From Podarcis gaigeae (taxonomy: Eukaryota), in NCBI GenBank assembly GCA_964106915.2, contig OZ066918.1: a DNA stretch of 64,000 nt; one strand, written 5' to 3'. Shown piece by piece: positions 17,524-25,385 of this stretch; the first letter of the stretch is position 1, and each line of letters begins with the position of its first letter. Position numbers and translations under genes: made by a program. Below the pieces are notes generated by a model. The model was not told the origin of the DNA, did no database searches, and saw only the letters and a list, made by a program, of their open reading frames with translations.

Positions 17524-17614
17524 TCAGTTTGTGTTCTTTTCCTTTTCATCTTTAGGAAGGCAGAGGCTGGATCTCCCTGGAGAACTTGTGGCTCTCTTTA
17601 TTACTTCCATCCAC
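17524..17614 (-). CDS. FARP2: FARP2 exon 27 coding part, stop TGA
   Basis: tgtcag|G TGG ATG GAA ... ACA AAC TGA TAG; (R)WMEVIKRATSSPGRSSLCLPKDEKEKNTN*. Confidence 0.93.
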
Positions 17615-18463
17615 CTGACAAGAGAAAAAAAGTCAACTGTCATGGCCCTAGTTCGTTACCTACTCACTATCATTCTTTGAATGTGCTACATAATAGTTTT
17701 TAGTAGGAATATTAATATTTTGCTTTCCATTTTGCTGAGGATTTTAGTAAGATTAACACTCAGACTAACACTTGAAAGTTAACTTACTGTAAAGAAGGAG
17801 CCACAGTATCCCAACAGCCACCTGATAATTTGAAGAAAGGTCTGTTCAATTATGCTAGGTTTGTTACTGTAGTGCAAAGGGAGAGTTATAGAAGGGAGTC
17901 CTAACCCACAAGGAAGGGGACTGGCAGTTAATGCCCCTCTTTTCCACTGCCTAGATGAGTAATATGCACACCAGATCACTTTTATGAAGAGCACAGAAAC
18001 TCAAAAGGAAGGGTCTCCCCAAGCTAAATTTTAATTTTTTAAAAAATTCCTCCTGGTTTTCCTGCTGCCAATGAGTAGTTTTACTGTCTCACCCAGCCCA
18101 GATGGTGAAGACTCAGTAGAGTCAGTGGTGCTATTCATTAGTGATTTTGCACAGTTATATCTTTATGGAGAAGGACCATCAAGTTTGGGACATTAAGCAC
18201 AACTTCCTAAAGAGTCTTAAATGTAAAGCCTAGACAGGTCCCATCACTGATCACAGTGCACATTGCCTGCAACCACATACAACCTCTCAGTCATCAACTT
18301 TTATCAGTAAGAACTGCTAAAACAAGGCTTCACTCAGGCTCATTCCACTAAACCATATGGTATGTGTGAGCACAGCCAGAGTATCTCTTTAGCCAAACAG
18401 AAATGGATTTGAGTGGTACATATTTACAATATAGAGGAATTGCAATCTCCTAATGTGATAAAT

Positions 18464-19877: not shown

Positions 19878-20126
19878 TATGTACAACTTCAATCTGAGCT
19901 ACTTTTGCACAGAGTTCTTTCACTGACAGATTTTGAAGTTAGCAGAACCCACCAAAAGTTATCTCATTCATTAATATAGGCAAGGCCACAGAAAGCATGA
20001 CTTCTGTGTGAAATTCCAGCAGCTTCCTCAACTCATTAGCAGGAGAGTTAGTAGAGAACATTTGTCAAAATAGTAACTGGGGGTAAAGAATGCATTTTGC
20101 AAATTATGTCTAGGAAGCACACTTAC

Positions 20127-20278
20127 CTCTCAAAGGTGTACTTGCTCTCAGCCCTGAAGAAATATACATGGGACTTGAACTGCAGTTTGAAGACATAATC
20201 CTTCTGAATGCCATCGGCCTCTACGGGTGTGCTGACAGTGTAACCAAGAAGTGGTAAACTGGCCAATGGATAATCATC
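20127..20278 (-). CDS. FARP2: FARP2 exon 26 (PH2)
   Basis: ttcag|GAT GAT TAT ... GAG AG|gtaagt; DDYPLASLPLLGYTVSTPVEADGIQKDYVFKLQFKSHVYFFRAESKYTFE. Confidence 0.96.
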
Positions 20279-20368
20279 CTGAAAAAATAGCCAGGTTTTA
20301 TTATTTATTTAACAGATGTCCATTCCACTCTTCAACCACCGTTTTCAGGGCAGTTTACAAATAAAATA

Positions 20369-20999: not shown

Positions 21000-21107
21000 C
21001 TGGTGCGTCTTGTAGAAGAACAAACAGAAGTTTGTAAAAACAACCCACAGCTTCTGCCAGCCGTTACTGTTTTTGAATTTCCTCAGTAGGTATCCTGACA
21101 GCTGGTT
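21000..21107 (-). CDS. FARP2: FARP2 exon 25 (PH2)
   Basis: tgtag|AAC CAG CTG ... CAC CAG|gtaaga; NQLSGYLLRKFKNSNGWQKLWVVFTNFCLFFYKTHQ. Confidence 0.96.
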
Positions 21108-22868
21108 CTACATGGAAGAGAGGAAAATACAGTGTTAAGTGACTAGTAGTCATTCTCCACAATCGCTCAACAAAAACCTGCCGTTAAATTTGCATTGCAG
21201 ATTCAAAAAACAAATAACTTTTTCTAGGGGATGACTGAATTTGAGAAAGACTGCTTCAGAGCCTTTTTGTACAATTAGATATTTTGTGCAAGAAGTATAA
21301 AAGTTACCTTTTTATGGTGGTGATATAATTTGCCAAGTGCAGTTAGAAAAGTTCCATATTTTTCCAGACAGTGCAATATCGGAGCATGGGTGTGTAGCAC
21401 AGACATTTACTGGCTATTCCCTGTGATGAAGTTAATGACCAAGCAATATAAAGCCACCACCCAACTCCATGGTTGTGTAATTTGGAGCCATTCAAAATTA
21501 CAACCCCCCCAACAAATTATTTGGGATTCTTTGCTCTGAAACTACAACACTGGAGTGCTTGTCAAGCATTGTGTATGTTATATTTATTTTACTGGCAGAC
21601 CAGCAAAAACACCCCCAATTGCCCCAACAGTCCTTTTATTTATTGCTTTTTTAAGCATTTGACCCCCAGGTTTTTAAGGAGGTGGGAAGTGAGACAGCAT
21701 TATTTTTTTATTCAGTTTGTAGCAGTGGCTCCGAAACTTGAAAAACACTTAACTGGTTTTTCCACTTGTAATAACTGTAATGTGCCGTGCTAGATGCTGT
21801 ATGGTTTTTAATTGCATTTTTCTTGCTTTTATTTCTTATATTCTATGTTATTGTATTACAATTTGCATTCCATAGAATGTCTGTCTAATACAGCCATGCT
21901 GTGGAGCACCTGCAAAAACCTCATGGACCACAGGTAGTCCACAGACTGCAGTTTAGGAACTCCTGCTCTATGGCAGAGCTACCTACTCCCCATTCAGATC
22001 CACTCAGTCCAGATAGGATATTTCATTGTTTCCACTAAAGGTTGTTTGAGTCAGGCTTTTCCTGATCATACTAAAAAGGCTCTAAGGCAGGTGAACCCAA
22101 TGTGCCCTCCAGATGATGTTGGACTACACCTCCCATCACCCCTCACCATTGGTCAAAGTGGCTGCGGCTGAGGGGAGTTGGTGTCTAGCAACTTCTGAAG
22201 GGCATCCTGCACCAAGGTGTCTTCTCTCAGGTATGCCAGCTACTAATGTAATGTCCATTTGTGCACACACCCACACATCCCTTTTTCACAGAGTGATAAC
22301 TCTGCGTACTGCATTTCCTCCACTGAAAGGGTAGAACAGTTATGGATGCAACTGATTCATGTCCGTGCTGTGTTAACTGTGCGACTTTAAGTCCTTTTTT
22401 TTGTCCTCTACAACATGCTAAGAACCAGTAAGCAACACACACAGCTTGCATTCTTAGTTAAGGAGAAAATACAACTAGAAGACAGAAAATGTTGAGGGAA
22501 AGCACACAGTAAAAAGCCCTGCAGAGCACATGGCAGCAATGCCACTTTTAAGTTAACATGCTGGTAAAGTGAAGAGTAAGCCCCACTGGAAGGAGAAGGA
22601 ACCTAACTTGCTGTGATCTAATCTATAGGATAAATGAAATGCATCAAAACAATGGCATGTGTATCCAGGGTTCTTTTTAATAAAGGGATTAATTTGGCTG
22701 ATTTCTGCAAGATACTTAAAGGATGTCTTACCATTCATTCCAATATTTTAGATCTTTGTTTCTGCACATTAGAACAGTGTTTAAGAGAGCTATAACGAGA
22801 TGGTACAAGTAGAAAATGACCGTCTTCATAGATCCTATCAATACTGAGAGTGAGTGAAGCAGCTTTAC

Positions 22869-22981
22869 CTGAATCATACACAAATAATCAGACAGGGATA
22901 GGCTCTGGTTCCGGTACCAGCAAACATGGGTGATTGTGTTGGGCCGCTGAGTCTGGCCCAGCAAATAGCGAGGAGGAAGCT
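22869..22981 (-). CDS. FARP2: FARP2 putative alternative exon 24b (paralog of 24a, predicted mutually exclusive)
   Basis: long pyrimidine tract ...gtttctccag|AG CTT CCT ... ATT CAG|gtaaag; (K)LPPRYLLGQTQRPNTITHVCWYRNQSLSLSDYLCMIQ; 113 nt, same entry and exit phase as 24a. Confidence 0.8.
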
Positions 22982-23590
22982 CTGGAGAAACAGCAAGAGA
23001 GCAGAAAACTGAGCAGAGAGGGTGCAGGGCAAAGAGAAAAAGAAAGAAAAAGGTGATTTAGAACAAGAAAGGGCAGTACACGAAAAGGTCTGTTAAAAGA
23101 AATAGTATGAAAAAAGAAAAAAAAGCTATGAAGTTCATTATTTGTAAGTCCTAAGATCAGCAGTGCGAGGGGCCACGGTGCTTTGGGGAGAAGTCAGGAA
23201 GATTTAACAAATTTACCTAAAACAGGGTTCTCAGTGGGCAAGATCACAAACTTTTGGTTTCATAACCCCAAAGCTGATTTCTTTCATTAGCTTTTTAGTG
23301 TGAATGGCAGCTGTTGATATATCAAAGCCCCCCTTTTTATCTTTTTTTCTTCTCCAAAGCACACCCTTGTTGAGAACATGATGGAAACATGCAGTCACAC
23401 ATACAAAGAACATCTTCAGATGTCTTGTGGTTACTCATTCATTTGCTCTCTCACACAAGACCACTGAAGTTATTGAAGGAAATGGGGGTGTTAAAACCGC
23501 ACACATGTATACAGTGCAGAGAAACCAGCAACCAAGACAGACAGAGTGGTAAGTGAAAGTGATAGTGATATGTGCTCTGCTGCTGGGTAC

Positions 23591-23754
23591 CTCGACGGCC
23601 ACACTGTGATCTGTCATGGAGACACTGGTGTTGCGGTACCAGCATACATGCATGGTAGTATTGGCACGGTGGTGGCTCTGCCTGTCCAGGGAGCTACGAG
23701 AAGAATGTATGTCCTCTTCGGACTCCTGTTCTAGAGATACCTCATCTGAGGATC
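23591..23754 (-). CDS. FARP2: FARP2 exon 24a (canonical PH1-PH2 linker)
   Basis: cctcag|GA TCC TCA ... GTC GAG|gtaccc; (R)SSDEVSLEQESEEDIHSSRSSLDRQSHHRANTTMHVCWYRNTSVSMTDHSVAVE; 164 nt. Confidence 0.94.
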
Positions 23755-24450
23755 CTGAGGGGGGAGAAGGGAGCAAACATTTAACAGGCTGTGGGCACAG
23801 GGGTAGTGACAGCAGCAAGGATTGCTGACGTATAATAGCATCTTCCCCTCACAAAAGGAATTGACATGCATGGGTTACTCTCCTTCTGACATCCATGACC
23901 TTCATAATTGGTAGCTTGAAGGATAGGACACCTCAAAGTTATTGCATAGGAAAAAGTCACACTCTGTTATATGGGGAAAATATTAAAAAGTTTACCCAGA
24001 AGCATCCTAGAAGGGTTTGATTTGTAGCAGAAGGGGATTCCTAGGAAATATATAATTTCCACCTGAGGAATGCCACAGTGTGCTTCAGTGGCCCAGTGGT
24101 GGGGGCGGATCCATAGATAAGGAGACATTCAGGAGTACACAGGATATTACTTCAATGACTTCCACAGATTGGTAAGTGAACTGTGGTTTAAAAGGATGAA
24201 TACTTTCCTGTGTAAGAGGGTGGTAAGGAAAGATTACACACTATAAACTTCATCATTATTGCTTTAACAGCTGGAAGTTCTTATTTGCCAAGCCTGAAAT
24301 ATCTGGAGCATCAGAGAGGGTATGGAATGTTACTTAGTGAAAAAGACTGAATGAAGGCTGCGTAATCTATACCATTTTCCATCTCAGAGGCCTGAAGAGC
24401 ACACAACTAACCAAGAATCACTAATCACAAGTGGCACGAAAGCTACTCAC

Positions 24451-24569
24451 TGTTAGAACGATTGCACACTGAGTTTTCTAGAAACATCTCTGATTTCTCA
24501 GTGAATTTCTTGGCCATTTCAATTGCCATATTTAGATCTTCCATCCACTTCCCCATTTCCAGACGAGTG
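24451..24569 (-). CDS. FARP2: FARP2 exon 23 (end of PH1)
   Basis: tttcag|C ACT CGT ... AAC A|gtgagt; TRLEMGKWMEDLNMAIEMAKKFTEKSEMFLENSVCNRSN. Confidence 0.94.
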
Positions 24570-25364: not shown

Positions 25365-25385
25365 CGGAGGATCCAGGACTATCAG
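25365..25385 (-). CDS. FARP2: FARP2 putative 21-nt microexon (LIVLDPP) inside PH1
   Basis: ttttttttatgtgtttgtgtttgattttcag|CTG ATA GTC CTG GAT CCT CCG|gtgagt; phase 0-0 in a phase-0 intron. Confidence 0.7.

Follow-up and report, generated by a model that had tools for sequence, protein, structure and literature searches.

The stretch analysed here (the window) comprises 64,000 nt of Podarcis gaigeae DNA (assembly GCA_964106915.2, contig OZ066918.1), and its minus strand carries the FARP2 gene, in which the exon encoding the linker between the two PH domains, PH1 and PH2, is present in two diverged copies, 24a and then 24b. An earlier note, made from the sequence alone, had read these as tandem-duplicated, frame-incompatible and mutually exclusive exons. 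Our analysis confirms that the tandem-duplicated pair is real, and 24a and 24b are very probably ancient, mutually exclusive coding exons of FARP2. The identity of the gene is supported by a PDB search in which 24a matched residues 348-399 of 4gzu with an E-value of 9e-17; in comparisons with FARP2 of snakes and lizards the neighbouring exons match at 78-100%, and exon 25 carries the FARP2-type NQLSGYLL, not the FARP1-type NQLSGNLL. The assignment to FARP2 and not FARP1 is based on the DH-PH-PH exons of the window. The features to which we refer are:

24451-24569, minus strand: exon 23, the end of the PH1 C-terminal helix and the start of the linker
23591-23754, minus strand: exon 24a, 164 nt, the canonical form, with an acidic Ser-rich stretch and the HVCWYRNTSVSM core
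23009-23590, minus strand: intron between 24a and 24b, 582 nt
22869-23008, minus strand: exon 24b, long form, 140 nt, with a conserved acceptor (CTGCTCAG/, at 23010-23009) and the donor CAG/GTAAAG
22869-22981, minus strand: exon 24b, short form, 113 nt, with its AG at 22983-22982, in the same phase as the long form
21001-21107, minus strand: exon 25, the first PH2 strands (NQLSGYLLRKFKNSNGWQKLW..), with an acceptor common to 24a and 24b
about 20111-20281, minus strand: exon 26, the rest of PH2, limits approximate
about 17527-17628, minus strand: exon 27, downstream of exon 26

Exon 23 terminates on one nucleotide of a split codon at 24451 (donor A/GTGAGT, where the slash marks the exon boundary), and both 24a and 24b open with the two nucleotides that complete this codon and close on a whole codon. 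Exon 24a is bounded by CCCCCCTCAG/ on its acceptor side and by the donor GAG/GTACCC, which is off consensus, a deviation that is itself conserved. The short form of 24b lies between TTTCTCCAG/ and CAG/GTAAAG, and the long form encodes (I)FCSLAVSPELPPRYLLGQ..HVCWYRNQSLSLSDYLCMIQ. No third copy of the exon was found within the 64-kb window. The 24a and 24b peptides align with a local BLOSUM62 score of 83, compared with 18.4 +/- 4.1 (maximum 45) for 2000 shuffles, and 13 of 27 residues are identical, the homologous part being only the C-terminal ~27 residues of each. Six of the 13 common residues are specified by synonymous codons that differ between the two exons, an initial indication that selection acts on the protein. 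When the 24b peptide was compared with the whole PDB, the only matches were to FARP2 (4gzu, E-value 2.7e-4) and FARP1 (4h6y).

The lengths of the two exons (164 nt for 24a, and 140 or 113 nt for 24b) are all 2 mod 3 and their phases are identical, so that an mRNA containing both or neither acquires a premature stop. As computed from the window, the frame remains open through exons 23, 24a and 25, and also through exons 23, 24b and 25 with either 24b acceptor; joining 24a to 24b leads to a TGA inside 24b, and skipping both leads to a TAA in exon 25. These stops precede later junctions, as exons 26 and 27 lie downstream, and a stop upstream of a later exon junction is expected to elicit nonsense-mediated decay (NMD). 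NMD would be predicted to police double-inclusion and double-skip mRNAs in this way. The earlier note's positions for the end of exon 23 (24451), for 24a (23754-23591, 164 nt) and for the start of exon 25 (21107) were all reproduced, its peptides and their shared core had been read correctly, with a similarity far above that of the shuffles, and its assertion that both or neither exon breaks the frame is borne out by the two stops.

For 24b itself, the earlier note had the donor, the phase and the location right, but not, in all likelihood, the start and the length, which it gave as 113 nt. A second in-phase AG is located at 23010-23009, 27 nt upstream of the acceptor it had chosen. In nucleotide register, this upstream AG is conserved as CAG/ in all genomic orthologues, and it is used in the teleost RNA contig L001, in which exon 23 is joined nine codons before LPPRY (..SDRSN-L-FGSPAVSPE-LPPRY..), whereas the downstream AG (22983-22982) reads CCTG in the teleost locus L005. 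Because the upstream AG is conserved and used in a teleost and the downstream one is not kept in L005, the exon is likely to be 23008-22869, or 140 nt. The long form adds I-FCSLAVSP, and the junction codon changes from K in the short form to E. The nine extra codons vary mainly at third positions and have a counterpart in the FARP1 copy. At best, the short-form AG may be a possible alternative 3' splice site, maybe in sauropsids. With the conserved acceptor, the order of 24a and then 24b stands, but the reported gap of 609 nt becomes an intron of 582 nt, and 24b is 8 amino acids shorter than 24a instead of 17. The acidic Ser-rich stretch is indeed missing from 24b, as had been noted, but it is not merely dropped: a conserved hydrophobic and proline-rich segment, FCSLAVSPELPPRY, takes its place.

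A phmmer search of 1.84 billion representatives with the 24b peptide returned 17 matches, 15 of them at E<1e-10. Most were short read-through open reading frames (ORFs) on teleost and bird genomic contigs, and the others were gene models of Danionella, Acipenser, Bambusicola and the marsupial Gracilinanus. Every genomic 24b ORF continues as Q/V, corresponding to a GT donor, and has, nine codons before LPPRY, a codon pair NNA-G.. that provides the AG. From teleosts to the marsupial, the amino-acid identity of 24b is 78-97%, and AG and GT are retained in every genomic copy seen. Conservation of 24b in vertebrates, which the earlier note had proposed to examine, is thus seen from fish to marsupial with splice sites intact, and none of the orthologues seen has the frameshifts or lost splice sites that it had associated with a decaying duplicate. 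The order 23/24a/24b/25, with exons of 164 and 140 nt, is shared by the window, a Bambusicola locus (L002), a second bird-like contig (L004) and the teleost locus L005. When the window is compared with the bird, only exons align and the introns give no alignment; the 24b block (23041-22864) is 90% identical over 180 nt and 24a is 90.7% identical over 183 nt, and in an in-register comparison conservation ends a few bases past the 24b donor. For 24b, nonsynonymous and synonymous divergence (dN and dS) are 0.01 and 0.29-0.39 between the window and birds, and 0.01 and 1.08 between two fishes; the corresponding values for 24a between the window and birds are 0.008-0.016 and 0.48-0.53. Differences in 24b between the window and fish are distributed 7/4/22 over the three codon positions. 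Judged by these substitution patterns, 24b is evidently under purifying selection as tight as that on 24a, with a dN/dS of about 0.03.

The most direct evidence for alternative use comes from two teleost RNA contigs. One (L001; Logan SRR21813220) runs from exon 23 through 24b (140 nt) to exon 25 with an ORF that continues to the stop, and the other (L006; SRR21284487) has the 164-nt 24a in place of 24b and ends at the same stop codon. The two agree at 100% over stretches of 250, 202 and 605 nt and at 99.9% over one of 1081 nt, indicating the same gene in the same species, and they differ in just two respects: the exchange of 24a for 24b and a 21-nt microexon (LIVLDAP) that is present in L001 only. 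They are direct evidence for either/or use of 24a and 24b in one teleost, and 24b is presumably used in the species of the window as well. Taken with the cross-species conservation, these two transcripts uphold the earlier reading of a tandem-duplicated, frame-incompatible, mutually exclusive pair.

The contigs also contain two features within PH1. The window has a counterpart of the 21-nt microexon at 25365-25385 (LIVLDPP), within a block (25407-25352) that is conserved with respect to the bird. In the teleost this microexon is alternative, being included with 24b (L001, 735-755) and skipped with 24a (L006), and the microexon choice and the 24a/24b choice may be coordinated. Both contigs retain the same ~90-nt stop-containing intron between ..RMFFL and FSDMLLY.. 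(L001, ~540-632; L006, ~160-251), which could be a detained intron or could reflect assembly of pre-mRNA reads.

The earlier note had also pointed to FARP1 as a place to look for an equivalent of 24b, and the same pair is found there, in a fish locus and in annotated proteins. In the fish FARP1 locus (L003), a 161-nt 24a-type exon precedes a 128-nt 24b-type exon, with 259 nt between them; the two are in the same phase, both are 2 mod 3, and the 24b-type exon has a pyrimidine-rich upstream tract and a GT donor. Two goodeid FARP1 proteins are near-identical except for the swap, that of Ameca being 24b-type and that of Ataeniobius 24a-type, and a FARP1 24b-type exon joined to exon 25 is also seen in Ficedula (a bird), Eleginops and Coryphaenoides. 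A word search for the FARP1 24b-type exon returned only two close relatives. In a tree built from 27 columns, all twelve 24b-type cores of FARP1 and FARP2 form one clade (ultrafast bootstrap 85, SH-like approximate likelihood ratio test 100), and the 24a-type cores group with the single form found in invertebrates. As the 24b-type cores form one clade and FARP1 has the same pair, the duplication probably took place before FARP1 and FARP2 split, although a tree of so few columns is suggestive rather than proof. In anuran FARP2, including the RefSeq entries of Bufo (P0151, XP_044146958.1) and Bombina (P0163, XP_053567516.1), the linker exon has a 24b-type core; in these proteins (also P0159 and P0160) the end of exon 23 is much changed and there is no acidic stretch. 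For Discoglossus, the neighbouring kinase gene is consistent with the synteny of FARP2.

Other accounts of 24b have to be considered. Open frames of 37-46 codons are no rarity in random sequence, and the reptile transcripts seen carry 24a, as might be expected if 24b were an unused, decaying duplicate (a pseudo-exon) with a chance open frame and splice-like sites. Such a reading is scarcely credible, however, given that 24b retains 78-97% amino-acid identity from teleosts to the marsupial with AG and GT in every copy, that its dN/dS is ~0.03 with conservation stopping sharply at the donor, and that it aligns to the bird as constitutive exons do, whereas introns do not; as 24b is spliced into a complete teleost ORF, this account is already contradicted in fish. 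We also regard it as very improbable that 24b serves chiefly as a poison exon, whose joint inclusion with 24a would trigger NMD and lower FARP2 output irrespective of the protein sequence. Joint inclusion does bring a TGA into frame within 24b, and regulated genes often contain conserved poison exons, but third-position changes dominate in the 24b frame, the CW.R core and PPRY are invariant, fish have a full ORF that includes 24b and no 24a, and the 24b-type core is the annotated form in frogs. A further possibility is that 24b mostly represents the 3' portion of an alternative first exon, transcribed from an internal promoter in the 24a-24b intron and yielding a short, PH2-only product. The models of Danionella, Gracilinanus (GC-rich upstream), Ficedula FARP1 and Eleginops FARP1 are of this kind, since they begin in the intron before 24b and proceed to exon 25. 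We consider it improbable because exon 23 is spliced straight onto 24b in the teleost transcript, the acceptor AG is kept in all copies, and the frame in the window has a stop 20 codons before 24b with no ATG after it; moreover, models of this type are expected when frame-incompatible exons break gene prediction, and others hold both exons plus invented filler. An alternative first exon could exist beside the swap in some lineages.

Along with those intron-initiated models, several observations weigh against the reading of 24a and 24b as mutually exclusive exons of FARP2. RNA support for the swap comes from one teleost species, and its two runs (SRR21813220 and SRR21284487) appeared in no paper that we found. 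The sauropsid transcripts recovered through protein searches (Micrurus, Podarcis and Phrynosoma) carry 24a only. We saw no 24b in placental mammals, which does not argue for its absence, because the databases hold such intronic ORFs only if an ATG precedes them, and FARP1 and FARP2 are absent from the available portions of the supplementary tables of two human catalogues (PMC5740500 and PMC9741552). Finally, in AlphaFold2 models of a teleost 24b-isoform fragment and of Ameca FARP1 (DH-PH1-24b-PH2), most of the 24b-type segment, with the CW.R core in it, has a predicted local distance difference test score (pLDDT) lower than 50.

Returning to 24a and 24b as mutually exclusive exons, we considered what could decide between them. 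In every locus, pyrimidines make up 69-74% of the 200 nt preceding 24b (71% in the window), compared with 54-68% before 24a (55-57% in sauropsid loci and 57% in the window), and the 24a donors are off consensus throughout the loci (GTACCC, GTACCG and GTATCA). The combination of a long pyrimidine tract and a weak 24a donor suggests regulated exon definition, for example by PTB-type repressors. Across the loci compared, no conserved UGCAUG or RBFOX-type GCAUG was found near 24b.

Other ways of enforcing exclusivity were considered and rejected. Steric hindrance is ruled out by the length of the 24a-24b intron, which measures 582 nt in the window and ranges from 856 to 1280 nt in other FARP2 loci, compared with a limit of ~60-80 nt between donor and branch point. 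Incompatibility between U2 and U12 splice sites finds no support, as the donors are GTACCC and GTAAAG, with none of the RTATCCTT type, and as both exons need the same exon 25 acceptor; nor can a conserved U12 branch site be seen ahead of exon 25 in L004 or L005. In the window, adjacent arms of the 24a-24b intron (23454-23492) can pair either with 24083-24098 upstream, looping out 24a (-25.5 kcal/mol), or with 21608-21627 downstream, looping out 24b (-27.4 kcal/mol). As a mechanism, competing RNA structures were discounted because these duplexes are at chance level (about 0.5-1 as good are expected), are absent from the bird and fish loci, and lie in introns that cannot be aligned with those of the bird.

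In the mechanism that we propose, 24a and 24b would each be spliced between exon 23 and exon 25 in the same phase, and the choice would be regulated through the weak donor of 24a and the long pyrimidine tract that precedes 24b. Transcripts with both exons or neither would encounter a premature stop with two junctions still downstream of it and would be removed by NMD, so that productive mRNAs would be only those in which a single choice had been made. The swap would retain the core (R.N...HVCW.R) before PH2 and alter both of its flanks.

Among 103 FARP sequences, the C, W and R of this core are invariant and the R, N, H and V nearly so, and both exons keep them. Exon 24a supplies the acidic Ser-rich stretch and ..NTSVSM.DHS.AVE, and 24b supplies the hydrophobic and proline-rich FCSLAVSPELPPRYLLGQ and ..NQSLSLSDYL.M.Q. 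Every FARP2 24b copy, from fish to marsupial, has an unchanged PPRY within SPELPPRY (window 22990-22964); in frogs APRY takes its place, and FARP1 24b is without it. Preceded by SPE, PPRY would be a PPxY-type motif and is a candidate WW-domain ligand or proline-directed kinase site. In the AlphaFold2 models, a helix extends from the end of 24b into the first PH2 strand, with confidence rising along it, and a Foldseek search returned 4gzu and 4h6y, as expected. With a pLDDT below 50 across most of the 24b segment, the models say nothing structural about autoinhibition, and an effect of the swap on autoinhibition, phospho-regulation or partner binding, or a difference between tissues, stays a hypothesis. 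The inter-domain linkers of the DH-PH-PH module are reportedly well ordered. This module is autoinhibited in FARP proteins, with PH2 and other elements blocking the GTPase site (PMC6041286), in agreement with the role that the earlier note had assigned to PH2, although elements other than PH2 contribute too. In the autoinhibited structures (4gzu and 4h6y; He et al., 2013, cited in PMC6041286), the 24a segment lies just before PH2; the crystallised DH-PH-PH modules contain the 24a form only, and the 24b form is not known to have been studied.

A literature search found no published description of mutually exclusive exons, splice variants or microexons in FARP1 or FARP2. There is a close parallel in FGFR2, whose exons IIIb and IIIc are 148 and 145 nt long and where double inclusion or skipping shifts the frame and the product is removed by NMD. 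As in FARP2, lengths that are not multiples of three guarantee exclusivity at the mRNA level, the choice is left to regulators, and a long pyrimidine tract precedes one exon; the FARP2 pair differs in that no conserved UGCAUG was found near 24b. The FARP2 exons also resemble the entries of human tandem duplicated exon catalogues (Hatje et al., 2017, PMC5740500; Martinez-Gomez et al., 2022, PMC9741552), which are adjacent, homologous exons of the same phase that substitute one segment for another, are ancient, and have both copies under purifying selection. However, unlike the catalogued pairs, the FARP2 exons are of 164 and 140 nt with homology over only the C-terminal ~27 residues, and the FARP 24b exon is seen in fish, frogs, sauropsids and a marsupial, not in placentals. 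The arrangement of the best intron duplexes of the window, which flank 24a and 24b with adjacent arms in the middle intron, is reminiscent of the competing RNA structures of ATE1 exons 7a/7b and of the Dscam type (10.1101/2020.06.04.134791; PMC6071210), although the FARP2 duplexes are no more stable than chance would give and the layout is absent in bird and fish, and we do not propose it as the mechanism.

Public gene models break at the exon pair, either holding both exons with filler or starting in the intron before 24b (P0022, P0033, P0101, P0010, P0015, P0117 and P0124), and the Acipenser sinensis model (P0021), which is flagged as unverified or possibly contaminated, holds two 24b copies. 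The pair accounts for this recurrent annotation failure, in which models are split here or combine both exons with filler. It is also an old addition to the known tandem-duplicated exon substitutions, and human-centred surveys have not listed it.

FARP1 and FARP2 connect adhesion and plexin/semaphorin receptors with Rac and Cdc42, and FARP2 is a regulator of cell shape and axon guidance. The crystal structures of their DH-PH-PH module show the closed state only, and it is not settled whether, or by what means, the module opens (PMC6041286). The 24a/24b exons offer a natural variant pair immediately before PH2, dating back more than 400 million years and shared by both paralogues, with which guanine nucleotide exchange factor (GEF) activity, binding and localisation could be compared. 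We put forward, as a speculation that we think unlikely to hold, that the pair is a binary switch predating the split of FARP1 and FARP2, situated in the segment that locks PH2 on the catalytic DH domain, which would exchange an acidic, CK2-like phospho-stretch for a proline-directed SPE and a PPxY docking motif, would belong with the microexon to one possibly neuronal programme, and would have been lost or left unannotated in placentals. If this were true, non-mammalian vertebrates would possess a FARP2 isoform whose autoinhibition is released differently, which could explain the 'pseudo-GEF' behaviour of the crystallised 24a form.
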